A DNA stretch of 63,018 nt, counting the filler, from Salisapilia sapeloensis CBS 127946 (lineage: Eukaryota > Protista > Oomycota), in the NCBI GenBank assembly GCA_023334545.1. It is 9 parts of 9 records of this genome, joined end to end, with 100 filler letters (N's around TTAATTAATTAA, not from the genome) between each part and the next. Parts side by side here need not be neighbours in the genome. Positions count along the whole stretch, not along the records: positions 25,263 to 29,988 come from JAADVB010000655.1; 8 more parts are not named here. The stretch is one strand, 5' to 3'. Positions 25-29,988 of this stretch are shown in pieces. The notes beneath the pieces were generated by a model, which made no database searches, was not told where the DNA came from, and saw only the letters and a list, made by a program, of their open reading frames with translations. Position 1 is the first letter of the stretch. Every line of letters begins with the position of its first letter. The position numbers were made by a program, and so were the translations under genes.

Positions 25-980
25 CTAGCTTGAAATCGACTGATGCAGAGAACCTTGGACGGTTCTTCGATTGTTCCAGTACGTAGCTCTCGTGAGATTT
101 TGAATGGTTTTCTCAGAATCGAAACTTGTCCAAGACATAACTTCATCCGTTGCAGTTTGACCATACTTACCTATCACGTTCGGACTCGCTCCCCAATCGG
201 CTAACAGTTTCACGATATTTGACCTTCCTACTGCTGCGGTGCGATATAGTGGCGTATTACCATCTTCATCCTGTCTATCTATGTCTGCACCATTTTGTAG
301 TAACAGGTTGATAACCTTCGCACGTCCGCTCTTGGCAACCCAATGAAGTTTAGTTTCGCCATACTAATCCTGTTTATAAACATCGGCACCATTTTCTATC
401 AGCACTTCCATTACTTTCACTTTCCCTCCATCCGCAGCAAGATGAAGTGGAGTACGACCCATTCTGTTTAGTACATGAATGTCCGCTGCATATTGCAAGA
501 GTACGCTTAAAGCTTTCTTTTGTCCAGCTTCAGTAGCATGATGAAGTGGAGCGGTACCATTAAATTCTGCTCATCAACCTCGGCTCCATTGTCTAAAAGC
601 ATCGTTGTAATCTCCACTTCTCCAAATCGGGAAGCAATATGAAGTGGAGTACGGCCCGATTTGTCTACTCTGTAATTGTCCGCTCCATGCTCTAGCAGCA
701 GACTTGCCACCTCCACAAATCCATATTCAGCAGCGATGTGAAGTGAAGTACGACCATAAGCATCCTGAGTATGGACGCCTGATTCATGTTGTAATAACAA
801 CTCTACCACTTTGACACGACCCCCTGACGCTGCCTTTATTAATGGTGACCCCGAAATGCCCTTCTCTTCATCCTTATAATTCACGTTGCCACCTTCCTAA
901 ATCATTGTGCGAATGCCTTCGACATCTCCTGCATACGCGTATTCCAATAATCTCTCGTCCGTGCTTTTAAGCGTAGCCAT
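25..980 (-). pseudogene. Ankyrin-repeat protein pseudogene
   Basis: ATG at 980 (MATLKSTDERLLEYAYAGDVEGIRTMI*EGGNVN), then ankyrin repeats (SPLIKAASGG, TSLHIAAEYG, TPLHIASRFG, TPLHLAADGG, TPLYRTAAVG) running through ORFs 507-884 and 25-213. Disrupted by an in-frame TAG at 897-899, a frameshift near 560 and a TAG at 364-366. The lesions fall inside repeat-coding sequence and no in-phase intron removes the first stop. Confidence 0.85.
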
Positions 981-1894
981 AGCCAGTTCTTATACTCAGA
1001 CGAAATCTCGTGGTAAATTAAGACTTGGACTTTGGACGTAAAATCGAAAAAGAGACTGGCGATAGATTAAGATCCGTTGAGGGAGAGGCGTTCCTTGTAA
1101 TGAGTCATTGGTATGAAAGTACCCTCACTGCAACGATGCAACAAGTTCAAACATTATCATAAAAGAAAGCGCGAAGAACGTAGTGTAAAGGTTTTATGGA
1201 TGGTTAGGCACGGATCAGCATAAGTAGCCGAGAAACGTAGCTCAAAGTAGCCGAAATAAGACCTGTAGGTATCATGAAGGTCTGTGAGTCTTTTGCAAGG
1301 TGAGTAGAGCATAACGCATAATGCAGACAAAAACTCAAGTTGCTTCAAGTAGTCAATGCCTATCAACCCAGTATTGACTTTATGAACTAGTTCAAGGGTG
1401 TTTCCTTAGAATTGGATTCCAATCATGACATTGAGTATCTTCTGGGCTTCTATAGCTGGCAGAGTTGCTTACATTCAATACATGCAAAGATCTGCATTAC
1501 CACAGCTCAAATCACTTTCATTCGACCACTGGCATGAGAAATTTATGCTCCAAAGAACAAGCACAAGCTCTAACGCTATCTACCGCTCCATTCTTTAGCG
1601 TAGTCAGTTAGAGTCTACAACTTGTTCTTTGCATTTTACTAGGTGCTTTGTCTCTTCGTGATTCCAGATGCGTCCTCCCATCAAGCCGAAAGTCTCATGG
1701 AAAACTTCGTTTCGATACTCCCATCGAGAGTCTTTCTCTAAATGTACACCCTCTTCCTACGCTTGGACTCTCTTCTCGAGAACCATCTGCTAGCAGTACG
1801 GGACAAGTGTCTAATCCCGCCTATTGGCACCCTCTAGACCGACCTGATGCGAGTAGGAGAGTCAGCCAGTTGATAATTTGACTGTCGGAGAAGG

Positions 1895-2317
1895 ATGAAG
1901 ACTACGATCTCGCTCATGATTACCCTTGCCGTCGTCCAGACTGCGACGACGTTCGCCCAGGACGAGGGTGTGAACTTTATCTCCACCGGCGGATGGAACA
2001 CTGCCGTGTCGAACGAAGAAGACGTGAAGGCTCGCGTGGAGGACGCGATCGGCGACCCGGCGACCGTTTGGGCAGACGACGTGGCCCAGTACACGAACAG
2101 CTTGTGCCTCACCAAGGTCAAGGACATTGAGCAGCAAGTCGTGGCCGGTATGAAGTACCGTGCCATCGCCGAAGGCTGTGAGGCTGAGCCGGACCGCAGC
2201 GGATACTGCAAGGAAGAGTGTGAAGAGGTGAAGGATTTCAAGGTCGTGACGATGGAGCACCTGTCGGACGCGAATGGCGACGTCGAGGTCGACATCCTGG
2301 AAGTCGAGTTTAACTGA
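1895..2317 (+). CDS. Secreted cystatin-like cysteine protease inhibitor (oomycete EPIC-like)
   Basis: Signal peptide MKTTISLMITLAVVQTATTFA, N-terminal trunk GGW, QxVxG loop (QQVVAG), four Cys, strong codon bias. Confidence 0.85.
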   Translation: MKTTISLMITLAVVQTATTFAQDEGVNFISTGGWNTAVSNEEDVKARVEDAIGDPATVWADDVAQYTNSLCLTKVKDIEQQVVAGMKYRAIAEGCEAEPDRSGYCKEECEEVKDFKVVTMEHLSDANGDVEVDILEVEFN

Positions 2318-3317
2318 TGAACTGAGCTACTTTTGTTTTCTTCCGACGATCTCGTTTGCTACATGTATCCGCTCGTACGTTTCTTCATGTCTCTTTGCTC
2401 GTGATGCGATGGTGGTCGAAAGACATCCGACGCATGGATATGGCTACTCCACTCGAGTAGTAGACGCAATGCATCAGCACTGGCGGGGTACTAGAAAGCA
2501 AATTGTACTGGGCTCTTGTGAGCTGTAGCGTGTTCACCATAGCCTTGTCGAAATATAAAAGGAGTAGGATTGTAGCTAGTCTTTGTACTGAATAGTATAC
2601 AAAGGAGTCCGACCGTAAGTAGAGTTTTTTACGCAAATGAGCATCCAAGAGGTGCGAATTGGATGAGATTCGAATGACTATGACCTACGACAATTGCACA
2701 CGCCTTTTACTTTTGCAACATAGTGCGACGTCGTCTACGAATACAAGCAATCTAGGGTACTGCTCAACTCCCATACACGAGTCAAGCTATACGTCATCTA
2801 TCGTGCAGATCGACCTTCGAAAGCACTCGCCTAAGTCGGTGTACAGGTGCATATGTCTTTAGCTACATTCAGAGAAGACATGGGTACTTAAGAGGGATTG
2901 TACCCAGGTTTTCTTCAGCTCTAGAGACGTGTGCACCCAAGACTTCAATCCCAGTCAGGAGGGAGAGGCATGGAATCCAAGTACCATACAATTCTCCCAA
3001 CAAAGTAAATTTTAGTCGTGTTCTTTAGTAACGTCCACATCCATTCCATCAGGTCTTCCCACACCATATGGGTACATGCTGTCTTCGGCAAGCATCCAAG
3101 TAGGCCTCGTCCTTGCCTACCTCTCCTATCGCTACTAGATGCATGACCATAGCTATTAAATAGACAACTATCCTCGATCTCTACCCAAGTTTCCATTGCT
3201 TTCAACCACCTTGCTACGACTACATCTCTTGTACCCATGATGCTTCTACCGCTACATCGCGCCAGATACCTCCTGTCAAGTCTTCTCGCATTTCAAATCA
3301 TAAAACTCAAGCAGGAG

Positions 3318-5411
3318 ATGACATCGATTTCGCACCGCCGAGACATGCTGCTGGAAGGCGCTCGGACGGGAGACTACGACCTGGTGCATGTCATGCTCTC
3401 CCGTGGCACGTCTGCGAGTTCCTCAGACAAACACGGCTTGTCGGCGCTGCACCACGCCGTCCGGTATGGTGACCGGCGCATCGTGAAAGCGCTGCTAAAG
3501 GAACGAGCCAACGTGGATAGCGTAACGAAAGAATCGGGTCAGACGCCACTCTTTTTCGCCGTGGAGAGGAACGACCTAGATATGATTCGACTGCTGATTA
3601 GCTGCCAAGCGAGCGTCCACGTGCAAGACGCGAGCGACAGAACACCGCTCTTGTACGCTGTCGAACTCGGCAGAACGGATGCGGTCGGGTTGCTCATGCG
3701 TCGCGGCGCCACGGCGTGCGTGCACGACCGTCAGAAACGGTCGGCGCTACGTATCGCCGTGGAGCACGGCCATGCAGATGTCGCAAAGTGCTTGATGAGT
3801 GAAAAGCGCATGGTCCATGAGGTCGGTCCGGACGGCAGGACGCCGCTGGACATTGCCATGATGAAGGGAAACCCCAAGACTATCATGCTCCTGGTTCACA
3901 AGGGCGCTGAGGTCAACCGGACGGACGACCAGGGCCGGACGCCGCTCATGTTCGCGACGGAATACAACAACGTGGCCGCCATGCGTGCGCTCCTGGACCA
4001 CGGCGCGAGTGTCGACGCCACCGACAGCACACGCAAGTACACGAGTCTACATGTAGCAGCCGTAAACGGACACTTGGAGGCCACCAAGCTGCTCGTCAGA
4101 CGTGGCGCACGCATCGACATTGAAGATCGACTCGGGCGCACTGCAGCGATGGTAGCCAACGCGTATGGCCACCAGGGACTGGCGAGTATACTAGAGAACG
4201 GCACAAGCTATCAGTTGTTCGAATTGGCCAAGGCAGGAGACGAGCAAGGCGTCAGAGCGTTGCTGGAGGGAGGCGCGGATGTAAACGCCAGCACGAAGGC
4301 ACAAGAGACTTGTCTGCACGTCGCGAGTGCGTCTGGCCATCCGTTAGTGGTGCAGATGCTCATGGAGCACGGCGCGGACGTGGACGCTTTAACGGCGCAG
4401 AACATGACGCCGCTACTGTACGCCGTCGACAACGGCAAGGCAGAGGCGGCGGCGATGCTGTTACATTTAGGAGCGAACGTGGAAGCGAGGAATGGACGTG
4501 GGTGGACGCCACTGATCATGGCGGCGCACAACCGAGACGCCAGGACGGTGCGTGCGCTGCTGGAAGGCGGTGGTGACGTGAACGGCAGCAGCAGCGAACA
4601 TAACGCTGGGTGGACGGCACTGCTGTTTGCCGCGGCCAAGGGCTGCGTGCCGGTGCTGGAAGTGCTGCTGGAGCACGGCGCGGACGCGGAAGTGCACACT
4701 TCGGATGGATGGACTGGCCTTACGTTTGCCGCTAGCAGAGGCTACGCATCAGCGGTAGCGTTTCTGCTATACAAAGGAGTGCAGGTGGACCCGCCGGCAC
4801 GGCAAGGGTGGACACCACTGCTCTTTGCCGTGGAGAGAGGACACAAGGACGTTGTGAGGTTACTACTGGGCTACGGCGCCAATGCGGAGGTAGTCGACAC
4901 GAGCGGCCAGTCAGCGAGTACAATCGCTCGTCGGAATGGGAGGGAGGATATGCTGGTTCTCCTGCAGCAGCCAGTTCCCGAGGATTGCATCGACATCCTC
5001 GGGACGGACGAGCAGCCGAGCTGGAAGATGTTCGACACGGACTCTCAGTCATTTGATGAGATGGACCGAGGGACGGCCGGTACGTCCATGTCGATGCTAG
5101 ATGAAGCGTTTCGGCAGCATGGTATTCGTCCTAGCGACAGCATTCATAGCGACGCCGATAGTCGTGTAGCTTTACGTAGTGGGTACCTGGACGAAAGCCA
5201 GTCGCCTAGATCTGTCCGCACTGCGTCGGCTGCGACAGACTCGGACCACTCCTTGCGTCACGGCTCTAGCATGTCTAGCATGCCAAGTCAGGACGAGGAG
5301 GACGAGTCAAGTCTCAAGGAAGGCTCGATCCGCTGCCGAACGTGCCGTTCGTCGATCGCGCCAGGCATGCGCTTTTGCGGCATGTGTGGAGACCGAGTGA
5401 AGGTCGTGTAG
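3318..5411 (+). CDS. Ankyrin-repeat protein (about 17 repeats) with C-terminal zinc ribbon
   Basis: Repeated TPLxxA...G units; Ser/Asp-rich tail; C-terminal CRTC...FCGMCG. Start chosen at MTSISH (ORF is open from 3237). Confidence 0.9.
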   Translation: MTSISHRRDMLLEGARTGDYDLVHVMLSRGTSASSSDKHGLSALHHAVRYGDRRIVKALLKERANVDSVTKESGQTPLFFAVERNDLDMIRLLISCQASVHVQDASDRTPLLYAVELGRTDAVGLLMRRGATACVHDRQKRSALRIAVEHGHADVAKCLMSEKRMVHEVGPDGRTPLDIAMMKGNPKTIMLLVHKGAEVNRTDDQGRTPLMFATEYNNVAAMRALLDHGASVDATDSTRKYTSLHVAAVNGHLEATKLLVRRGARIDIEDRLGRTAAMVANAYGHQGLASILENGTSYQLFELAKAGDEQGVRALLEGGADVNASTKAQETCLHVASASGHPLVVQMLMEHGADVDALTAQNMTPLLYAVDNGKAEAAAMLLHLGANVEARNGRGWTPLIMAAHNRDARTVRALLEGGGDVNGSSSEHNAGWTALLFAAAKGCVPVLEVLLEHGADAEVHTSDGWTGLTFAASRGYASAVAFLLYKGVQVDPPARQGWTPLLFAVERGHKDVVRLLLGYGANAEVVDTSGQSASTIARRNGREDMLVLLQQPVPEDCIDILGTDEQPSWKMFDTDSQSFDEMDRGTAGTSMSMLDEAFRQHGIRPSDSIHSDADSRVALRSGYLDESQSPRSVRTASAATDSDHSLRHGSSMSSMPSQDEEDESSLKEGSIRCRTCRSSIAPGMRFCGMCGDRVKVV

Positions 5412-5761
5412 ATGTGTCGGAAAAGTATGAGTGAAAAGGATCAGCGGCGTGGGATATGTCGATACGTTCGTGTGAATACATATAAGATCAAGAAAGTATA
5501 TGAGTTACCAGTGCTTCAAAAGCTTCCTAGTACGTATGTACGACTTAATTATCATGACCAAGAAGTAGCATGGTATGTGCATGTGCTGGAACATTTATAT
5601 TAGATAAATGGCACGCTGCAAAGCGACGCGTATGAAGATATGTGCTAATAGATGGGCAGGTGAGCACGACTGCTGGTACTCGAATAAGAAAATTATTTAT
5701 TAAAGAAAAGAATATATGCAAATTTATTTCGTCTGAGCAATTGGGACGGAGACGGCAGCAG

Positions 5762-7886: not shown

Positions 7887-10800
7887 CTAGTTATTAGCTT
7901 CTTCCGGAATCGAGTCTTCTACCTGCACTAGCTCCTTTCGCACCCACCGCCGTCGACGAACGGATCGACCGACGAGCTTACTTAGTCGCTTCTTGAGCCG
8001 TCGCCGGTCTTTGCTCAGGAGCCGGTTGGTGTCTTGGAGGTGGAGAAAGTCTTTCATCCGAGTGGCGTACTGCCACTGGTCTGTCGTGCCAAACTCCCTG
8101 TCGATCGCCCAGTCCGACAGGTCGAAGCAGGCAGTCCCGTCCGTCATGTCGGCGTCCGTGAACCGCGGCGGATCCGTCACGAGCAAGTGGCCAGGTACGG
8201 TCGACCCCCAGCCGCTAAAGACTTGGTAACGTTGGATCTCGTACACGACTTGCTCGTCCATCGGTAGCTCCCGGACTTTGCTTTCGAACGATGAAAAGGA
8301 AGAGAGCGATGCGCTTGGCTCTCGACTCGGCGTCGGGCTGCTCGGCCGGTTGCTCAAGTCACGAGTCGATAGAACGCCGCCGATCTTTTGCATGCTCAGC
8401 GTCACGGGGATGATCAAGTCTCGAATCGGACTCAGGAACCGATCGTCCAAGGCTGCCGTCGAGAAGGCAAAGCCAGTGTAAGCTTCTCCTGATTCCACTG
8501 CATGCGCTTTCTGGAGTGCCTTGGCCTTGGAAGGTGTCAAGACGACGTCTTCTTCGTCCGTTCCGAACTCAAAGTCCCTCGGGTCCTGCGTCAAGTCCGC
8601 CTCGAACGGCTCCAATTCCAACGACGGAGCTTCCCACTTCGCTAACTCTGGATCCGAGCGTTTGCAGTGGAGCTCTTGTAGGATGTGGTAGTACTCTGGC
8701 TCGAACTCTCGCTTGTACGCCTTGTAGACAAAGTCTCTACCGAGACACAAGAGCAGACACAAGTACATGAGGATGTAGAACTCAGGTAGGCAGAATAGAT
8801 AAGGAAAGACAGTGTCCGAGATGGAGATGGGGAGCATGACAGAGGTCACCCACGCAGACAGGTACCACACGAGGAGAGAACCAAACATAGATAGCACCGT
8901 CACAAAGTTCCACGTGACGGTATTGAGCGCTAGCTTAACCCATCCGACGGAGATCATGGCGCAGTATGAGATGCCTCCGCAGATCTCGCGCGAGTAGCCG
9001 TACCCTTGGGAATCAATGTACCCTCCCAGCAAGGCCGGGACGAACGCACAGACGGATGCTTCGTACATAGCTTCGAGGATCCACTCGGTGAAGATCACGA
9101 GGTTGAACTGCTCTCCACGCAATCCAAACGAGTAGAGACTTGGGAACTGTTCTGCGATGCGAGCGGGAACGTCTTGGTCTGACACAGCGACGACTGCGAT
9201 TGGGACTGACGTCCATAAGACGTTATATCCGTTGATCCACATGTTATTGTAGTAGAGCGTCCCGGAGCCGCCGCTCAGCAAGCCGAAGACGTACTCTGCC
9301 ATGTACAACACAATGTTCTTGTACACGATGTAGAGCGTGAGTTTGGCCATCCGACGGTAGTTCCAGCGCCCGTGGACGAGAAGCAGTCTCTTCAGAAACC
9401 GAAACTGAGCGATAGCAAAGTCAGACGAGTTGACGGCCTGCATGCCTTCATGCCCAGAGATGCCGACGCCAATATGCGCCTCCTGGATCATCCCGACATC
9501 ATTCGCGCCGTCTCCGATCGCCAGCGTCCGACATCCACGGACACTCGTCTTGTAGAGCCGAACGACCTGCGCCTTTTGCTTTGGCGACACTCGACAGCAG
9601 ATGACGGTGCTGCACTGCTGCGAGACTTCGAGGAAAAAGTCGCGTAGGGCGGTGCAAGCGAAGATCATCGACAGACTCTGGCCGTCGACGATGAGACTCA
9701 TGCGGTGTTGCTGGTTGGTCTTCTGTCGATCCTGCCGTCGCATGCGTGCGATGATGCACTGCTGGACGAGCATCTCGAAGAGAGAGAAATGCGTCGGAAA
9801 CCTATCGCCCGTGATTGCCAGTCGCTCCATGTCGTTATCGAGCAGTCGGCAGGCAAACGCGATGTTCACCGCCGTCTCCTCCTTGTCTCCCGTCAGGACC
9901 CACAGACGAACACCTGCTCGCGCTAAATCTCCGATCGTATTGCTGACCTTGTCCTGAAGTCGGTCTTCAATAGCCGTGGCTCCAAGCAGCTCCAGTCCAC
10001 TCTCGAGCTCTTCCTCGAGCTCTTCCACCTTCGTCTCTAGTTCCTCTCGATGCCTCGGCTGTCCTTGCAACGCTGCCACTGCCTGTCGGTAGCGCTTTAG
10101 CCATGTAATAAACGTCTCATTCGATATCTCTTTCTGCGCTATCACGAGCGTCCGGAGACCTTCCGTGGCGTACCTTTCCAAGTCATCTTGTGTCGTCTCT
10201 AGTAACGATGCATCACCTTTGGCCAAATCGATGCGAGGGAAGATAGCAGTGTCGGCACCTTTTGTCAGGACCATCACCTTCTTGTCCGGCGTCCGCACCA
10301 CAACAGACATGCGTTTCCGAGCACTCGTGAACTCGATCACTTCCAACAGCTCAAACTCGTGCACGCCTCGACCTCGGCTCGGAGGCATGCGAACGACGAT
10401 AGCACCACTTTTCCGAGCGACGAACGAGTATCCAAAGTAGTTGGCGCCCGACACGAGCGCTAGTTCATCGGGAGATGAAGCGGAGAAGGTTGGCTCAGCG
10501 CCATCGATGACCTGCTCCACGACGACAGAGTGGCAGACAGCCAAGTGCGTTAAGAAGGCATGGATCTTGTCTGCCTGGACGGAATCCTTCTCGCCATTTG
10601 CATCTAGGTAAAAGTCGCCGGTGGGATCCAGGAACCGAACGTTGTCGACGCGGACATCTTCCTCCTCTGCGTCATCTGCCAGGAGGTCTCGGACCGATAG
10701 CTTTTGACCGAGCCGTTGGATCGCATCTCGACCGATTTCGGTCGTTCCTCGGCCGTACGAAATACCATTCACACTCATTTTCCGAAAATTCATTTCGTTT

Positions 10801-12230
10801 GCTGTTAGTGTTCCTGTCTTATCGCTGAATATGTGCGTCACTTGGCCTAGGTCGTCGTTCAGATCGGCGTTCCGGACGAGCGTTCTTGTGTCTGTCACTT
10901 CATCGTAGATGTGGATATCTTGCGTGAGGAAGTACGTTTGGTAGTTCTTCACGATCGCGATTGTAACGTAGAGCGTGATGGGGACAAAGGATGCGATGAG
11001 GATCCAGTAGTAGCCGAGATAGATGAACCACCCGAGGAGGTCATTCCGAAAAGGAGCTTCTCCTCTTGGGTCCCCTAGAAGCAAGTAGGTGGCGGTGGAG
11101 TTGTACGTGGCCACCCAGACGGAGCAGATGATGGCGCCAAGCACACACAGGACAAACAGTATCGCCAAGAGGACGCCGACGCCGTGGTTCACAATGGCCA
11201 GAATCTTACTCTGCTTGGTCGGCATCTCTGTCGACGACTGCGTGATCTTCGTATCTCGACCGGTGTTAAGCACGAGGCCGTAGATGAAAGCAGTGTTGCG
11301 GACGACAGAACCACGGAAGATGACATTCTTCAGGTCCACTGGTATCGTATGGCCTCGATGAGGCTCATACCGACCAGAGAACTTGTTGATGTCGTGGTTG
11401 GGTAGCTCGCAGATGACTCGGCCAGGGAGATTGCTAAGCGAGTGCGGGTTGCTCAGCTGCCCAAAGGTGCATGAGAGCGCTTGTCGGACCTTGAGATTCG
11501 TCTCACCGTCGAGCGACTTGGTTTCCACAAAGCAAATGCCGGTGGGTGCCGTCGGATCTGGTTCAGCGACGGCAATGAGGAGCAAGTCAGCAGGCACCGG
11601 GTCGTAGTTGCAGACCTTGAGGATAGACCCGACGCGGACATCTCGCCAGAAGATTTCTCGAAATGGCGTCGAAAGACCAGCGTTCGGCTCAAATAGTTGC
11701 GTCAGGCGAGCGTTCACTTTCCGGTCGGCCTGGTGCCGAGCGTTGTCTTCGATCGCAGCGAAGAGAGCGTCGATGGAGAGCACCATGAGGAGGACGATCC
11801 ATTGGTACGGAATGCCCCCGGTGGACGAGATTTCCGGGATGACTTGGCCGAGGCCGACGAGGAGAAAGTAAAAGTTGGCGACCTGCGTCAGGCGGTCGTG
11901 GAGGAAGCGAGGGACAAAGTTGAGCAGCGAGTACTTGGCTGTCACGACCGTGTTGTCACAATAAGCAGCGTTCTTCCCAGGAGCATTCAGGTAGACGACA
12001 CGAGAGGTCGCGGCGCTCAGACCCCGTTGCTTGGACGTATTCGCGCCTCTGAGCCTGATCCGACGACGTGCAGCCGGAACTTCTGTCGTTTCCTCGCCAT
12101 CGATGGAGGTGACATCCGCCTGGTCGATCGAAACGTAAGTGGAGATGGACGCATCGCTCCGGACGGATTCAAAGCGCTCGGTGCTGGAGCGATGCCGACC
12201 CCGCCGGGACGAATCCTCCGGGATGTCCAT
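7887..12230 (-). CDS. P4-type ATPase (phospholipid flippase) with C-terminal DysF-like domain
   Basis: DGET, DKTGTLT phosphorylation site, TGDK, GDGAND, TM4 PITL (PISL-type), YKN in TM5. Intronless. Start placed at MDIPED (12230); an upstream ATG exists at 12302. Confidence 0.95.
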   Translation of the reverse strand: MDIPEDSSRRGRHRSSTERFESVRSDASISTYVSIDQADVTSIDGEETTEVPAARRRIRLRGANTSKQRGLSAATSRVVYLNAPGKNAAYCDNTVVTAKYSLLNFVPRFLHDRLTQVANFYFLLVGLGQVIPEISSTGGIPYQWIVLLMVLSIDALFAAIEDNARHQADRKVNARLTQLFEPNAGLSTPFREIFWRDVRVGSILKVCNYDPVPADLLLIAVAEPDPTAPTGICFVETKSLDGETNLKVRQALSCTFGQLSNPHSLSNLPGRVICELPNHDINKFSGRYEPHRGHTIPVDLKNVIFRGSVVRNTAFIYGLVLNTGRDTKITQSSTEMPTKQSKILAIVNHGVGVLLAILFVLCVLGAIICSVWVATYNSTATYLLLGDPRGEAPFRNDLLGWFIYLGYYWILIASFVPITLYVTIAIVKNYQTYFLTQDIHIYDEVTDTRTLVRNADLNDDLGQVTHIFSDKTGTLTANEMNFRKMSVNGISYGRGTTEIGRDAIQRLGQKLSVRDLLADDAEEEDVRVDNVRFLDPTGDFYLDANGEKDSVQADKIHAFLTHLAVCHSVVVEQVIDGAEPTFSASSPDELALVSGANYFGYSFVARKSGAIVVRMPPSRGRGVHEFELLEVIEFTSARKRMSVVVRTPDKKVMVLTKGADTAIFPRIDLAKGDASLLETTQDDLERYATEGLRTLVIAQKEISNETFITWLKRYRQAVAALQGQPRHREELETKVEELEEELESGLELLGATAIEDRLQDKVSNTIGDLARAGVRLWVLTGDKEETAVNIAFACRLLDNDMERLAITGDRFPTHFSLFEMLVQQCIIARMRRQDRQKTNQQHRMSLIVDGQSLSMIFACTALRDFFLEVSQQCSTVICCRVSPKQKAQVVRLYKTSVRGCRTLAIGDGANDVGMIQEAHIGVGISGHEGMQAVNSSDFAIAQFRFLKRLLLVHGRWNYRRMAKLTLYIVYKNIVLYMAEYVFGLLSGGSGTLYYNNMWINGYNVLWTSVPIAVVAVSDQDVPARIAEQFPSLYSFGLRGEQFNLVIFTEWILEAMYEASVCAFVPALLGGYIDSQGYGYSREICGGISYCAMISVGWVKLALNTVTWNFVTVLSMFGSLLVWYLSAWVTSVMLPISISDTVFPYLFCLPEFYILMYLCLLLCLGRDFVYKAYKREFEPEYYHILQELHCKRSDPELAKWEAPSLELEPFEADLTQDPRDFEFGTDEEDVVLTPSKAKALQKAHAVESGEAYTGFAFSTAALDDRFLSPIRDLIIPVTLSMQKIGGVLSTRDLSNRPSSPTPSREPSASLSSFSSFESKVRELPMDEQVVYEIQRYQVFSGWGSTVPGHLLVTDPPRFTDADMTDGTACFDLSDWAIDREFGTTDQWQYATRMKDFLHLQDTNRLLSKDRRRLKKRLSKLVGRSVRRRRWVRKELVQVEDSIPEEANN

Positions 12231-25262: not shown

Positions 25263-25263
25263 G

Positions 25264-28200
25264 TTCTGCGTTGACGAGATTCCTGTTCTCGGATGCTATG
25301 TCGGTAAGAACGGATGCCGACCAGACCCCGAGAAGGTGAAGTCGATTTGCGACTGGCCAGTGCCCAAGACACCCAAGCAGCTGCGACAATGGATGGGTCT
25401 TGCGAACTATTTGCATAAGTACGCAAAAGACTATGCCGGGCTCGTGCAGCCGTTGTCACGGCTGCTGAAGAAGGATGTCGAATGGCAATGGGGTGCTCAA
25501 GAGCAGGAGGCCTTCGAAGCGATTAAAAAGCGACTGATGGAAGCGCCAGTGTTGAAGCTTCCGGAGTACGGAAGGCCGTTCCATGTCGTGTGCGATGCAA
25601 GTAATTTCGCGATCGGATGTGCGCTCATGCAAGTAGATGATGATGGACATGAGCGCGTAGTTAGCTATCAATCGCGGCAACTCAAGTCAGCTGAGTTGCG
25701 TTATCCCGTGCATGACAAGGAACTTCTCGCGATGAAATATGCCTTGACGAAGTTCCGCGTTTATCTCCTGGGAGAAGAACGCTTCGTGGTATATACGGAT
25801 CATGCGTCCTTGAGAACGGCCACGAAATCGCCACACCTCAGCGACCGTATGGCACGGTGGCTTTCGTTCTTCTCGCAGTTCAACTTCGTCGTCTTCTACA
25901 AGCCTGGGAAAATGAATGTTATCGCTGACGCCTTGAGTCGACGCCCAGACTACGATCCGAGTGAAGATGAAGCATATGAGAACACTCCATGTCCGAAGTG
26001 TGAGACTGAGGAACTTCGAGCCACCAAAGTGGTTCCGCGTCTGTCACTAACAGACGCCATCAGAGAAGCATACGCAAAAGATGCCTTTTGTTGCGAACTC
26101 ATCGAGTATCTGAGTACACTCGATGCTAGCGCCGAAAAGAAGCTGTCGGCGCGTACACGCGCTCGCCTACATCGCTATTCACTCCAGCGTGAGCTCTTGT
26201 GCTATGCGATCGATGACATGGATACGCCACGCGTCGTTGTGCCGAACGACGCCGATCTGCGTGCACGCATCATACATGAGTACCACGATGCGCCCAGCGG
26301 AGCACATGCTGGACGCGAGAAGACGTTCAATGCATTGGCACGTGACTATTATTGGCCTCATATGTACAAGTGGGTTCGTAAATGGGTACGCTCCTGCGAG
26401 ACATGTCAAAGAGTGAAGCCTGCGCCCGCTTCTCGGGCGCCACTGCAGTCACTTCCGATACCGTCGGATGCATGGAAGTCGGTCAGTATGGACTTCATCT
26501 TCGGCTTGCCACCGGATAAGGCCGGTCGCACGGGCATCCTCGTCTTCGTCGACCGTCTTAGCAAGATGACTCACCTTGCTCCTGTAAAGCAAACGGTTTC
26601 AGCGGAAGAGTCCGCTGGCATCTTCCTGGATACTGTGTTTCGACTTCACGGCATGCCTGAAAGCATCGTGTCGGACCGAGACCCACGGTTTACTGCGTCC
26701 TTCTGGCGTCGGATATTCCGACGCGTCGGTACCAAACTAGACATGTCGACGTCAGCACACCCCGAGACGGACGGGCAAACAGAGCGGGTGAACCGCACTC
26801 TTGGAGATATACTGCGCAGCTATGCCGCGAGCTACACGTCATGGAGCGACATGTTACCCATGGCTGAGTTCGCATTGAATAATGCTGTCCATTCCTCTAC
26901 GGGAGTCACCCCGTTCTACGTCAATTATGCCCGTCACCCACGGACGCCTGCGGCACTTGGAATCGCACCGAGCGCACCCATTGCTTCGTCTGGAGGGGGA
27001 GAGACATCGAACGCCTCGATGTCGTCGTCGAGTCAACACAATAACCGCCTTACAGCGTCGGTAACGAGACCGACGCGAGGACAGGACTCACGGTTTGACG
27101 ATATTGACTCGACAAGAGGTGACAAACCGACGCTAGGACACGCGTCACACGAGAATAATGGAGGCGACTCGCAGGATAGGCCTGTCCGAGAAACGCCCGC
27201 TTCCGCTTGGTCGACAGCACATACTACCGATGATGGTGCTGTGCCATATCAGAGATCATTTCGGGATGTTGTACTTGGTACACCGAAACACGTGGTGTCA
27301 AGTCGACAACATTCGAACAACACGTTGGTCGCAGTCAACCAACGTCAAACACGCAATGAGTCAGGACACGTCATTGCAAGCCATGGGGCAGAGCCCGTCG
27401 CAGAAGAAGAAGACCCGTCAAGGGCGGAACGAGCCGCGGACGCCGTGTTAGAACAACGTCAATCCATACTGCGGTATGTGCGAGATGCAGTCGCAGACGC
27501 AGTGGATAGGCAAAAGGAGCAATCAGATCGGTCCGGCCGACGAAATCACGAGACCTTCCGTCCTGGGGACAAGGTACTGCTGTCCACATCCGAACTTCCG
27601 TCGGACGTTCTGGGCCAGACGGAATCTAAAGTAACTGCGCGGTTCATCGGACCATTCAGAGTAAAAGCACGACAGGGATCGGCATATACTTTAGAGCTGC
27701 CTAAAGGAATACGGCTACACTCGACCTTCTATGTCGGGCGTTTGAAACGCTATCATCCGTCTATGAGCCCTACTTCCTTGATGGAGGATTCGTCGGACCG
27801 TCGCCTCCGACGTCAAAACCCTGCCTCTGCAGTTGAGCACGCAGGTCGCGAAGGTTTTGGTTCGTCGTCAGAATCATGTTCCGGATCTGCTGCCGGTCCT
27901 GCCGGTCCTGAGTCCGACCTTCCTGCAACACCTCCACATCATACAACAGTGTTGCCACGTCATCCGCGTTCTGCAGCGAACGCTCGTCAGTCTCGCGGAA
28001 AAAGCGGGGCACCGGCCCGGTCACAACCGGAGTATCGCTTGCAGTCGGAGGAGCCACCGGCTGATCAGGCGAGCGTCGGCCTTCACCCCGACGCGGCTGG
28101 TCCATGGCAGGAGCGTTTACAACGGAAGAGCGGACAGGCAGAGGTGTCGACGGCGCCGGTGCACTCACCGGCGCGAGAGGTGGCACAGGATTCGGCGGCG

Positions 28201-28803
28201 GAGCCGAAGCAGGCGTCGGTTGACGTACCGGCGCGGGAGGCGGATTCGGTGGATGATTCGGTGCAGCGGCAGCATAGTCGCGGGTCGAAGCGGGGAGATC
28301 GCGTGGTGGTGACTCCCGACTCCCACTATGGTGCGAGCGGCGCTCACGATAATCTCCGTATGGGCGGTAGCGACGATTGCGGCGGTCAGGAGAGCTCGTT
28401 GCCGGCGAATAGTCACGCTCACGATACGCATCGTAAGGAGCACTACGAGCGGGAAGGTCCTCCCGCTCTGGTTGACGCTGCGGGCCATACGCGCTGGGTC
28501 GTTGATCGTATCGTTGACCACTGCGATACTCTCCCGGATAACCGGTCGAGCGGCGGGGGTCGTAAGACCCGCCGCGATAGTCGTCGCGCCTCTCGCGCCA
28601 ATCGTGTTGGCGCTCAACGTAATCGGGATCCCAGCGCTGGTAATACGCGCTTGTATCGGGTCCGCTGGCTTGGCTACTCGGCCAACTCCGATACGTGGGA
28701 GCCTCGGGAGCAGTTGATGGACGACGTTCCGGACGTCGTTGCGGACTACGAGGCTCTCTTGAACGCGTCCGGTGAACCGGACGCCCGTGCCCTGAGTCAG
28801 TAA
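25264..28803 (+). CDS. Gypsy Pol (RT C-terminus, RNase H, integrase, chromodomain), 5'-partial
   Basis: Open from the gap (FCVDEIPVLGCYVGKNGCRPDPEKV). RNase H CDAS/ELLA/YTDH/ADALSR; integrase zinc finger H..H..CETC and DDE (SMDF, SDRD, DGQTERVN); GPF motif; chromodomain YRVRWLGY..DTWEP. No stops. Confidence 0.96.
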   Translation, partial: FCVDEIPVLGCYVGKNGCRPDPEKVKSICDWPVPKTPKQLRQWMGLANYLHKYAKDYAGLVQPLSRLLKKDVEWQWGAQEQEAFEAIKKRLMEAPVLKLPEYGRPFHVVCDASNFAIGCALMQVDDDGHERVVSYQSRQLKSAELRYPVHDKELLAMKYALTKFRVYLLGEERFVVYTDHASLRTATKSPHLSDRMARWLSFFSQFNFVVFYKPGKMNVIADALSRRPDYDPSEDEAYENTPCPKCETEELRATKVVPRLSLTDAIREAYAKDAFCCELIEYLSTLDASAEKKLSARTRARLHRYSLQRELLCYAIDDMDTPRVVVPNDADLRARIIHEYHDAPSGAHAGREKTFNALARDYYWPHMYKWVRKWVRSCETCQRVKPAPASRAPLQSLPIPSDAWKSVSMDFIFGLPPDKAGRTGILVFVDRLSKMTHLAPVKQTVSAEESAGIFLDTVFRLHGMPESIVSDRDPRFTASFWRRIFRRVGTKLDMSTSAHPETDGQTERVNRTLGDILRSYAASYTSWSDMLPMAEFALNNAVHSSTGVTPFYVNYARHPRTPAALGIAPSAPIASSGGGETSNASMSSSSQHNNRLTASVTRPTRGQDSRFDDIDSTRGDKPTLGHASHENNGGDSQDRPVRETPASAWSTAHTTDDGAVPYQRSFRDVVLGTPKHVVSSRQHSNNTLVAVNQRQTRNESGHVIASHGAEPVAEEEDPSRAERAADAVLEQRQSILRYVRDAVADAVDRQKEQSDRSGRRNHETFRPGDKVLLSTSELPSDVLGQTESKVTARFIGPFRVKARQGSAYTLELPKGIRLHSTFYVGRLKRYHPSMSPTSLMEDSSDRRLRRQNPASAVEHAGREGFGSSSESCSGSAAGPAGPESDLPATPPHHTTVLPRHPRSAANARQSRGKSGAPARSQPEYRLQSEEPPADQASVGLHPDAAGPWQERLQRKSGQAEVSTAPVHSPAREVAQDSAAEPKQASVDVPAREADSVDDSVQRQHSRGSKRGDRVVVTPDSHYGASGAHDNLRMGGSDDCGGQESSLPANSHAHDTHRKEHYEREGPPALVDAAGHTRWVVDRIVDHCDTLPDNRSSGGGRKTRRDSRRASRANRVGAQRNRDPSAGNTRLYRVRWLGYSANSDTWEPREQLMDDVPDVVADYEALLNASGEPDARALSQ

Positions 28804-29590
28804 GGGCACGACGCAACCGCAAAACCAGGTCACTCAATTGAGATGAGATCGGGTATCTACGCAGACTATCCTCCCAATCTTCTATCGTGTCAGTCATATT
28901 GACGCTAGCACACACACGACAATCGCCAATCGCGGCCGTGAAGCACGGCCGCCGTTCCTTCACACACACAGCATGTACTCGCTCACGAAGAGATCGCAAC
29001 GAATATCGCTCGTTGTAATGCCTACGATGACGGATGACAGACTCGAAGTCGCGTTCGTGTTGGTATCGCTTGATGAATTCATTCCAAGAGGCGCGCAGAG
29101 CATGATGTGATTTGTCCATCGACTTGCCCTTGCTCTCGCGATATCGAATGAATAGATCCTTCATCTCAGCGAAAGTGAGATTCGTCTTGGTATCACCAAG
29201 CTCATACAACTCGAGCGGATGTAGGCTTCCTTCGGAGTATGTCATTCGCGACCGGTCCTCTCGACAACCGGTCGCCGGCCGAGTGTCTGTCGATGATTGT
29301 TCCATCGTTTTAGACTCATTCGTTGCAACTGGAGCTCCGGAAGACGCCATGGAATCAGTCACAGCCGATTGCTCGGCTGTTGGTATTGCTACTGATCCAG
29401 TCGTCCCTGTGTTATCTTGTGATGGCTCCATAGTCTCTACGAGCACATTCCCGACTGTAGATGAAGGCCCAGCGTCGGCGTTCGGTGCCGATGTTCCCTC
29501 ATCAGTCTGGTTTTCAGCGTCCGCTGGCACGGATGCGTTGTTGCTTTCGGTTTCGTTGTTTGCCGGAGGCTGTGAGCGAGTTTGTACCAT
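27770..29590 (-). CDS. Antisense extra ORF of the retrotransposon (606 aa, unknown function)
   Basis: ATG 29590 to stop 27770. Folded-looking middle domain with an H/C cluster (HAVC-x6-C-x7-CRVC), RS/RE-rich and Pro-rich regions, C-terminal coiled coil. INR+FPR about 65 nt upstream. Confidence 0.75.
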   Translation of the reverse strand: MVQTRSQPPANNETESNNASVPADAENQTDEGTSAPNADAGPSSTVGNVLVETMEPSQDNTGTTGSVAIPTAEQSAVTDSMASSGAPVATNESKTMEQSSTDTRPATGCREDRSRMTYSEGSLHPLELYELGDTKTNLTFAEMKDLFIRYRESKGKSMDKSHHALRASWNEFIKRYQHERDFESVIRHRRHYNERYSLRSLRERVHAVCVKERRPCFTAAIGDCRVCASVNMTDTIEDWEDSLRRYPISSQLSDLVLRLRRALTDSGHGRPVHRTRSREPRSPQRRPERRPSTAPEAPTYRSWPSSQASGPDTSAYYQRWDPDYVERQHDWRERRDDYRGGSYDPRRSTGYPGEYRSGQRYDQRPSAYGPQRQPEREDLPARSAPYDAYRERDYSPATSSPDRRNRRYRPYGDYRERRSHHSGSRESPPRDLPASTRDYAAAAPNHPPNPPPAPVRQPTPASAPPPNPVPPLAPVSAPAPSTPLPVRSSVVNAPAMDQPRRGEGRRSPDQPVAPPTASDTPVVTGPVPRFFRETDERSLQNADDVATLLYDVEVLQEGRTQDRQDRQQIRNMILTTNQNLRDLRAQLQRQGFDVGGDGPTNPPSRK

Positions 29591-29643
29591 GCTGGGCAAA
29601 GGGATGCAAGTTGGATTGCTAGGCGTCCTGTGAGGAAGGAATC

Positions 29644-29659
29644 GAATTAGCGAGTGAAG
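29644..29659 (-). promoter_or_regulatory. INR+FPR core promoter of the antisense ORF
   Basis: Minus strand CTTCACTCGCTAATTC fits TCAYTYB-NNN-WTTY; predicted TSS about 29655. Confidence 0.6.
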
Positions 29660-29831
29660 AGTTTTAGTGTGTGAATTCAATGGTGTGCGTCCGAAAGGTT
29701 CGGACGCGAAGAAGATCAAGGAGGAGTCAGGCGATATCCGCTTTATCTCAGGAAGAGCGATCTGGCGACGTGCGAAACAAGGGCCGACCCCTGATGCGTC
29801 TTCAGATGTGCAATTCGGTGTTTGCAATCTT

Positions 29832-29843
29832 GAGAGGGGGTGG
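29832..29843 (+). other. Polypurine tract
   Basis: GAGAGGGGGTGG directly before TGTAACG. Confidence 0.85.
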
Positions 29844-29988
29844 TGTAACGGGTAGATAACCGTTACTTTAGGCTAGGTTGCTATCTTTTCTTTTGTTACT
29901 GTCTTTCTGGTTTGGTGCATGTTTAGATGACCTACTGCCTTGTCTGATATAAGATATACGTAGTACTTGTAGTCAGAAAGGATGTGTA
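29844..29988 (+). repeat. 3' LTR (partial, runs into gap)
   Basis: Begins TGTAACGGG immediately after the PPT. Confidence 0.85.

Follow-up and report, generated by a model that had tools for sequence, protein, structure and literature searches.

Antisense additional open reading frames (ORFs) of the aORF-3R class are known from plant Ty3/Gypsy elements, namely, gene23 of Grande in maize, those of RIRE2 in rice and Retand in Silene, and ORF2 of PvRetro13 in Phaseolus (PMC7264820). Botrytis cinerea and Sclerotinia have Boty-like Gypsy elements that carry the antisense gene brtn (Zhao et al. 2011, cited in PMC7264820), and an antisense promoter at the 3′ long terminal repeat (LTR) is known in human T-cell leukaemia virus (HTLV) (PMC7264820). 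For oomycete LTR elements, descriptions have been limited to gag and pol domains, and the main survey of oomycete Gypsy elements contains 0 occurrences of antisense or additional ORFs (PMC5348765). In the present study, we analyzed a 63,018-nucleotide stretch (the window; nine joined parts, filler included) from the oomycete Salisapilia sapeloensis CBS 127946 (GCA_023334545.1). One part, JAADVB010000655.1 (the piece, positions 25263–29988), holds the 3′ half of a chromodomain-bearing Ty3/Gypsy element, and an antisense gene of 606 codons lies between its 3′ LTR and pol. We consider it probable, although by no means certain, that this minus-strand ORF is a genuine third gene of a chromodomain-bearing Ty3/Gypsy lineage in peronosporalean and pythialean oomycetes and specifies, from a separate transcript, an antisense nucleic-acid-binding accessory factor.

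The gene resembles the plant aORF-3R genes in its place and orientation, its presence across copies and related families, its lack of database similarity, and its suspected nuclear or regulatory role. The product contains a candidate coiled coil, and PvRetro13 ORF2 is likewise coiled-coil-like. The antisense ATG (position 29590) is located 253 nt inside the LTR edge, and the gene reads toward pol and runs 1034 nt into it. The gene was present in 9/9 related loci, three of which were picked by pol alone, and the ratio of non-synonymous to synonymous substitutions (dN/dS) in relatives was 0.29–0.37. However, there is no detectable sequence relationship with the plant ORFs, and the host is an oomycete, not a plant. 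The plant examples are of the Tat/Retand type, whereas the element examined here bears a chromodomain. Plant ORFs lie between pol and the LTR (PMC7264820), whereas the oomycete gene has half of its length overprinted on pol and its chromodomain, with the phase conserved. The comparison with plant antisense ORFs that was made when the window was first read from its sequence is apt as an analogy (PMC7264820), not as homology.

The brtn gene, as described through PMC7264820, is also an additional antisense gene in the 3′ terminal part of a Gypsy element, and the host is a filamentous plant pathogen. However, no fungal protein was found among the homologues of the window gene, which points to independent acquisition; brtn was compared by its description only. 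HBZ of HTLV-1 is likewise encoded antisense at the 3′ end of a retroelement and has a C-terminal helical dimerization region. This is an analogy of layout only: the window protein has no bZIP domain (no Pfam match at E≤0.1) and no homology to HBZ, and its predicted helix lacks a recognizable preceding basic region. Since neither a plant or fungal homologue nor a bZIP domain was found, the window gene does not belong to the plant or fungal aORF families or to that of HBZ. True homologues of the window domain include PITG_13482 of Phytophthora infestans and KAG1702106.1 of P. capsici, both annotated as hypothetical, with their retroelement context unannotated. Among the oomycete Gypsy groups, Chronos and Archon also have a chromodomain at the end of pol (PMC5348765). 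Chronos is defined by a second, archaeal-type RNase H (PMC5348765), whereas the pol piece in the window has only the Gypsy RNase H; Pfam detected no second archaeal- or plant-type domain (RVT_3 or RNase_H) between RNase H and integrase.

The gene is distinct from the known antisense ORFs in host clade, in its chromodomain-type element, and in its long, phase-conserved overlap with pol. The comparison indicates independent origins of antisense accessory genes in the Gypsy elements of plants, fungi, and oomycetes and suggests a common selective need.

Antisense open reading frame

The antisense gene occupies positions 27770–29590 on the minus strand (606 codons and a stop, intact), with its ATG at 29590 and its stop codon at 27770–27772. 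The minus strand is open from 29872 to 27773, and the ATG at 29590 is the first in frame. The overlap with pol spans 27770–28803 (1034 nt) and covers the linker, the chromodomain, and the pol tail. The C-terminal half is overprinted on the linker between integrase and the chromodomain and on the chromodomain itself, in the same phase as in relatives. The N-terminal half, including the folded domain, sits in the otherwise non-coding spacer between pol and the LTR. The antisense stop codon lies 14 nt past the end of the SH3_Tf2-1 domain of integrase, and the same juxtaposition was found in loci of P. capsici (L001) and P. rubi (L005).

The G+C content of the overlap (0.62–0.67) lowers the frequency of stop codons, and a long ORF opposite pol could in principle arise by chance in such sequence and be non-coding. 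However, when the overlapped pol segment was codon-shuffled, an average of 6.1 stops fell in the antisense phase, which was free of stops in only 0.09% of the 20000 shuffles. Over the 811 upstream codons of pol, this phase contains 28 stops, and the 356 open antisense codons outside pol were equalled in 0/5000 shuffles. The antisense ORF is not due to chance. The shuffle tests, together with the cross-genus homologues, the dN/dS values below 1, and the high-confidence fold described below, contradict a chance origin, and we give it practically no credence. The sequence-only reading had placed an ATG-initiated minus-strand ORF of 606 amino acids at 29590–27770, between pol and the polypurine tract, and this was confirmed by the ORF bounds and the shuffle tests.

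Two features of nucleotide composition were noted in the overlap. The G+C content rises to 0.62–0.67 exactly across the dual-coding stretch (27813–28712) from 0.50–0.57 elsewhere in the piece, which is consistent with the avoidance of stops in two frames. An imperfect direct repeat at 28137–28243 (two 47-nt copies, 70% identical, 60 nt apart) is located inside the overlap, in the pol linker and the Pro-rich tract of the antisense protein. The repeat suggests that the overlap region may have grown by local duplication.

Protein family and related loci

An exhaustive phmmer search with antisense residues 1–290 against 1.84 billion representatives returned 28 proteins at E<1e-3, including nine at E<1e-10 (best 5e-16), and all matches fell on query residues ~120–280. 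A profile search built from these homologues added 29 members, with E values down to 1e-91, and the family comprises ~57 proteins. Every named member is an oomycete "hypothetical protein", and the remainder are environmental; neither search returned a plant or fungal protein. The family is represented in P. infestans, P. capsici, P. fragariae, P. rubi, P. ramorum, P. palmivora, P. nicotianae, P. cactorum, P. idaei, and P. oleae and, beyond Phytophthora, in Peronospora belbahrii, Nothophytophthora sp., and Pythium insidiosum. A word-indexed protein search with residues 1–290 gave zero matches because the relatives are too divergent for exact 5-mers. Zero relatives were confirmed in a metagenome locus scan with the N-terminal 290 amino acids, and an exact look-up of the 606-residue protein found no record. 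Pfam searches of the window protein and 28 relatives returned no real match, only coiled-coil noise. No description of the gene was found in the open-access papers searched, and none of them mentions PITG_13482.

Nine related loci were compared. They are from P. capsici (L001), Pythium insidiosum (L002), Nothophytophthora (L003), P. fragariae (L004), P. rubi (L005 and L006), a Logan assembly (L007), and ENA (L008 and L009); the last three were picked by the similarity of their pol to that of the window alone, as a guard against ascertainment bias. All nine carried the antisense gene, eight of them inside elements at the same position and in the same phase, with L003 as the exception. In L001, L002, L004, L005, and L006, the homologue is antisense at the 3′ end of pol, and in L004, protease and gag then also follow. 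The pol stop falls inside the homologue in 5/5 of these loci, with an overlap of 194–704 nt, and the first position of the pol codons is opposite the first position of the antisense codons, as it is in the window. In L007–L009, gag and pol are intact, and ATG-initiated antisense ORFs of 437, 345, and 345 amino acids match the family profile (E 1e-60 to 1e-65) and overlap pol by ~600–1000 nt.

The phase of the overlap may also be read from the proteins. The stretch EAPTYRSW of the antisense protein (28682–28705, minus strand) is the antisense "shadow" of the conserved D-T-W-E-P stretch of the chromodomain. The AP(T/M/V)Y shadow recurs in many family members and provides an independent read-out of the conserved phase.

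At the level of sequence, these results establish a conserved, element-borne antisense coding gene between the 3′ LTR and pol that ranges at least from Pythium sensu lato to Phytophthora and the downy mildews. The sequence-only reading had proposed a dedicated accessory gene of an oomycete chromodomain Gypsy element, and the family of ~57 proteins, its presence in all nine loci, and purifying selection in the Phytophthora copies bear this out.

The pol of L001, L002, L004, L005, and L006 is broken, with a minimum of 1, 4, 1, 2, and 2 frame changes and 3, 1, 1, 2, and 2 internal stops, respectively. The intact state of the antisense ORFs in these five loci reflects how the loci were found, and the combination of a broken pol with an intact antisense ORF may reflect ascertainment only.

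The homologue in L003 stands among ordinary host genes, with zero pol within 9 kb. This would suit a different origin, in which this copy acquired a host gene fragment in a single transduction, or in which the window gene belongs to the host and simply adjoins a truncated element. However, in the eight other related loci, the gene is part of an element and keeps its position and phase. L003 itself keeps the chromodomain shadow motif and, at the expected place on the opposite strand, a weak chromodomain relic, which marks it as a decayed 3′ fragment of an element. Moreover, no element-free member with host-gene features was found among the loci examined. We regard the capture of a host gene as extremely unlikely.

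The L003 member, P0002 (553 amino acids; 9001–10662, plus strand), is located near genes for NDK, PH, and SET domain proteins, and its C-terminal half is unrelated to the family. The opposite strand has a 436-codon ORF (9550–10860, minus strand). P0002 is probably a decayed element fragment that was merged into a gene model. L003 was also considered as the host progenitor of the antisense gene and was rejected on account of the chromodomain shadow and the opposite-strand relic.

Selection in the overlapping frames

dN/dS was calculated by the Nei-Gojobori method on the folded domain outside pol, among Phytophthora copies. Between two subfamilies, dN/dS was 0.37 (dS ~0.24; Fisher p ~0.001), and against the P. 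capsici copy, it was ~0.29 (Fisher p ~1e-8) at a dS of ~1.3, which is near saturation. In the near-identical copies of P. fragariae and P. rubi, dN/dS was 0.86 (dS 0.04), which was not significant with four synonymous and 11 non-synonymous differences. The values for the more distant pairs indicate that the antisense domain is under purifying selection in the Phytophthora copies. The nearest pol in the databases is only ~65% identical to that of the window, and the evidence for selection comes from relatives.

The two frames were then compared zone by zone between P. fragariae and P. capsici (P0015 vs P0006). In the domain, identity was 0.40–0.63 in the antisense frame vs 0.17–0.40 in the pol frame. 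In the chromodomain, it was 0.52–0.67 in the pol frame vs 0.33–0.38 in the antisense frame, and in the C-terminal helix, 0.64 in the antisense frame vs 0.32 in the pol frame. These zones suggest that the two genes alternate as the constrained frame and that the pol linker is a passenger.

The same data bear on whether the antisense RNA itself is functional and the protein incidental. A transcript of the gene would complement 1034 nt of pol, and regulatory antisense RNAs have been discussed for other retroelements (PMC7264820). Such an RNA might pair with ~1 kb of the genomic RNA and feed small-RNA silencing, or it might limit the element that produces it. However, the non-overlapping domain is constrained at the protein level (dN/dS 0.29–0.37), and the confident predicted fold and the Cys, His, Trp, and Arg columns are kept across genera at ~30% identity. 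An RNA-only role also would not hold 600 codons open in 9/9 loci. We find it quite unlikely that the RNA is the sole functional product; a role of the RNA alongside the protein stays compatible with the data.

Predicted protein structure

The antisense protein falls into four regions. Residues 1–126 (29213–29590, minus strand) form a disordered, acidic, Ser/Thr/Ala-rich head with an isoelectric point (pI) of 4.1. The head is lineage-specific: relatives differ in its length, and L007–L009 lack it. Residues 127–268 (28787–29212, minus strand) form the conserved all-helical domain that defines the family (pI 9.2), and all but its last six codons (28787–28803) are outside pol. Residues 269–529 (28004–28786, minus strand), opposite the pol tail, the chromodomain, and the linker, are disordered and rich in Pro (20%), Arg (17%), and Ser (11%), with a pI of 10.4. 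Residues 530–589 (27824–28003, minus strand) form a C-terminal helix of 60 residues and a candidate coiled coil. The Arg/Ser-rich tract and the C-terminal helix are common to many relatives, some of which also have a short basic tail.

AlphaFold with the family alignment predicted eight helices for residues ~130–268 (~140 residues), with predicted local distance difference test (pLDDT) scores of ~90–97. The C-terminal helix was predicted with pLDDT scores of 73–96, and 59% of its a/d positions are hydrophobic vs 33% overall. The layout given by the sequence-only reading, namely, an acidic, Ser/Thr-rich head, a folded domain, and RS- and Pro-rich tracts, was reproduced by AlphaFold and by composition. 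Structure prediction of the Cys/His domain, which that reading had suggested as a check, gave the confident eight-helix model, and its guess of a C-terminal coiled coil agrees broadly with the single long helix at 530–589 and its heptad bias.

Foldseek comparisons of the domain model had a best E value of 3 (TM-score ≤0.27) against the PDB and of 0.39 against BFVD, both of which were taken as no match. The family profile had zero matches among PDB sequences, and no known zinc-finger family was found by Pfam, PDB sequence, or fold. The all-helical domain is predicted to be a novel fold.

The domain contains a putative metal-binding cluster, H206-x9-C216-x7-C224-x2-C227 (28910–28975, minus strand), which was recognized by column conservation. 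Position 206 is H in 13/28 and C in 13/28 proteins (H or C in 26/28), and C216 is kept in 25/28, C224 in 23/25, and C227 in 20/25. The four Cys/His columns are kept in the family at fixed spacing, as in zinc-binding sites. Metal sites typically show this pattern, in which H and C are exchanged at one position and three Cys keep a fixed spacing. The possible zinc site first suggested for this region holds in part: H206, C216, C224, and C227 are conserved, whereas C209 is not (12/28). Among other residues, W169 is invariant, R151, K156, L165, and L201 are each kept in 27/28 proteins, and F147, R149, S168, and R202 are strongly conserved.

The structure also bears on a role as a structural, env-like, or movement-type particle protein. 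Extra ORFs after pol are env-like in some LTR elements (PMC7264820), and the long helix could mediate assembly. However, the genomic RNA cannot serve as a template for the protein because the gene is antisense. Its translation has no N-terminal hydrophobic signal and no long hydrophobic segment, as read directly with no dedicated predictor run. AlphaFold predicts only a soluble helical domain and one amphipathic helix, and disordered, highly charged sequence accounts for over half of the protein. We consider a particle protein to be very unlikely.

Upstream region of the antisense gene

The leader between the edge of the 3′ LTR and the antisense ATG (29591–29843, minus strand; 253 nt) contains zero ATG in any frame. 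The context of the start codon is good, with A at −3 and G at +4. In 10/10 loci, at least 114 nt separate the start codon from the closest ATG 5′ of it, against a random expectation of ~1 ATG per 64 nt. In the window, L008, and L010, the ATG-free sequence fills the whole distance between the LTR edge and the start codon. The ATG-free leader fits, as indirect evidence, a scanned 5′ leader and a transcript that would start near the inner edge of the LTR.

In oomycetes, the core promoter motifs INR (YCAYTYY) and FPR (MWTTTNC) form a joint 16-nt block, YCAYTYY-NN-MWTTTNC, with a 2-nt spacer (PMC3599244). The sequence-only reading had assigned the gene its own core promoter of this type at 29644–29659, and this was not borne out. 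The INR+FPR-like site lies at 29642–29657 (minus strand), ~65 nt 5′ of the ATG, and has three mismatches to the published 16-nt definition; 22 such three-mismatch sites occur in the piece vs 18.4 ± 4.2 expected, a chance frequency. No exact INR or FPR was found in the 398 nt upstream of the antisense ATG. Exact INR, FPR, and DPEP scans upstream of the gene in the window and six relatives found single INRs at variable distances (seven in 2.8 kb vs ~2.7 expected), which is not convincing as a promoter signal.

The antisense frame is also open for 94 codons 5′ of the ATG (29591–29872), through the polypurine tract and the first ~29 nt of the LTR, and this stretch contains no in-frame ATG. The openness could be due to chance, or it could hint at an upstream or spliced start. 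L010 and L011, two short Logan contigs that contain the gene, were considered as transcripts and rejected: they have an LTR start, a pol end, and no poly(A) and are genomic fragments.

Proposed role

We propose that a separate antisense transcript originates close to the inner boundary of the 3′ LTR or within the ATG-free leader of ~250 nt. It would encode a modular protein with a variable acidic head, a helical domain with a basic motif and an H/C-C-C-C metal site, an Arg/Ser/Pro-rich tract, and a long helix, the last of which may serve self-association. The protein probably binds nucleic acid, is probably nuclear, and would serve as an accessory or regulatory factor for the RNA, DNA, or transcription of its own element, in the manner of the antisense genes of Grande, RIRE2, Retand, Boty, and HTLV-1. 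Hints of this are the H/C exchange at position 206 with its three Cys, the invariant or nearly invariant R149, R151, K156, W169, and R202, the basic pI of the domain and the middle tract, and the heptad bias of the long helix; the ATG-free leaders and the start-codon context are indirect hints of separate expression. As a side effect, such a transcript would complement ~1 kb of the genomic RNA. A bolder version, which we offer tentatively and hold to be somewhat doubtful, is that an accessory gene older than the split between Pythium and Phytophthora, with an unseen metal-binding helical fold and an overprinted C-terminal half, encodes a regulator, either of the expression of the element itself or of host silencing, that is made from an antisense promoter at the 3′ LTR.

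The protein may instead counteract host defence, for example, RNA silencing or chromatin repression, rather than serve steps of replication. Its basic, Arg/Ser-rich, putatively nucleic-acid-binding architecture would suit such an antagonist, as would the restriction of the family to oomycete elements. The antisense protein also diverges faster than pol, with identities between genera of ~30% vs ~60%. However, it has no similarity to known suppressors or known domains, and the present data fit the regulatory role proposed above equally well. We regard defence antagonism as unlikely; it is the sole alternative function of the protein that we still take seriously.

Several points weigh against a nucleic-acid-binding accessory factor made from its own transcript. 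The INR+FPR site is at chance level. Selection was shown for relatives, not for this copy, and the dN/dS of the closest pair (~0.9) is as expected of dead copies, in a comparison that carries few differences (4 + 11). For five of the nine related loci, the route of discovery was an intact annotated protein, which favours open ORFs, and their pol is broken. The heptad signal of the coiled coil is modest, and the basic C-terminal tail of some relatives is weak in the window protein. The function was read from composition and conserved residues only, and the domain has no relative in Pfam, the PDB, or BFVD.

Much of the Phytophthora genome consists of Gypsy elements, which shape the gene-sparse regions in which effector genes evolve. 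If the bolder version is correct, no accessory gene would have been described earlier for stramenopile retroelements, and the gene would be a natural, long-lived case of antisense dual coding in a eukaryotic mobile element. With a third conserved element-borne gene, dozens of oomycete "hypothetical proteins" may be recognized as retroelement genes. The antisense gene may also provide a handle on the regulation of the element or its evasion of silencing. For studies on overprinting, it offers a clean case of antisense overlap with alternating frame dominance.

The host element

Pfam searches and direct reading of the sequence identified the piece as the 3′ half of a chromodomain-bearing Ty3/Gypsy element. 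The pol ORF (25336–28803, plus strand; 1155 codons; stop codon at 28801–28803) is cut at its 5′ end by the edge of the piece and has zero stops and zero frameshifts within it. It encodes RNase H (residues 52–182; 25489–25881; RT_RNaseH/RT_RNaseH_2, E 3e-33), the zinc-binding domain and catalytic core of integrase (residues 305–476; 26248–26763; Integrase_H2C2, E 1e-22; rve, E 4e-8), the C-terminal SH3_Tf2-1 domain of integrase (residues 744–807; 27565–27756; E 6e-12), and a C-terminal chromodomain (residues 1105–1139; 28648–28752; Chromo, E 4e-8), all on the plus strand. Integrase_H2C2, rve, SH3_Tf2-1, and Chromo follow one another in a single uninterrupted frame. The reverse transcriptase domain falls outside the piece, and the label "chromovirus-like" rests on domain order. 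The nearest database pol sequences, which are only ~65% identical, are polyproteins of oomycete Gypsy elements in which RVT_1, rve, SH3_Tf2-1, and Chromo are present.

The linker between SH3_Tf2-1 and the chromodomain (27757–28647, plus strand; ~297 codons; G+C content of 0.62–0.67) has no Pfam match and is wholly opposite the C-terminal half of the antisense gene. A tblastn search with pol residues 813–1033 from this linker gave zero matches among the relatives. Between the integrase core and SH3_Tf2-1, pol also has an unusually long Ser/Gly/Thr-rich stretch of ~267 residues (26764–27564, plus strand) without a Pfam match. Only some relatives align with this stretch (query coverage of pol matches of 70–79% vs ~48%).

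By direct reading, a polypurine tract-like run (29832–29843, plus strand) lies directly 5′ of the LTR, and the same layout was found in L010. The 3′ LTR begins with TGTAACGGG (29844–29988, plus strand) and is cut by the edge of the piece; the same terminus was found in L008, L010, and L011. At 29832–29844, a polypurine tract is thus followed by a TG-initiated LTR; this applies to the 3′ LTR, the 5′ LTR being beyond the piece. The LTR terminus (TGTAAC...) and the adjoining purine tract are common to the window, L008, L010, and L011, and the antisense proteins are only ~30% identical. The LTR end and the polypurine tract therefore appear to be more conserved than the accessory protein.

Two further elements were noted in the P. 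rubi loci. L005 contains a second Gypsy element beside the copy with the antisense gene (236–5365, minus strand), which is Chronos-like in that it contains an additional RNase H of the RVT_3 type and gives a weak chromodomain match; the profile of the antisense domain had no match in this element, the 3′ end of which is cut by the locus edge. In L006, a DDE_Tnp_4 transposase gene (4628–5468, plus strand) within the pol region represents a nested DNA transposon insertion.

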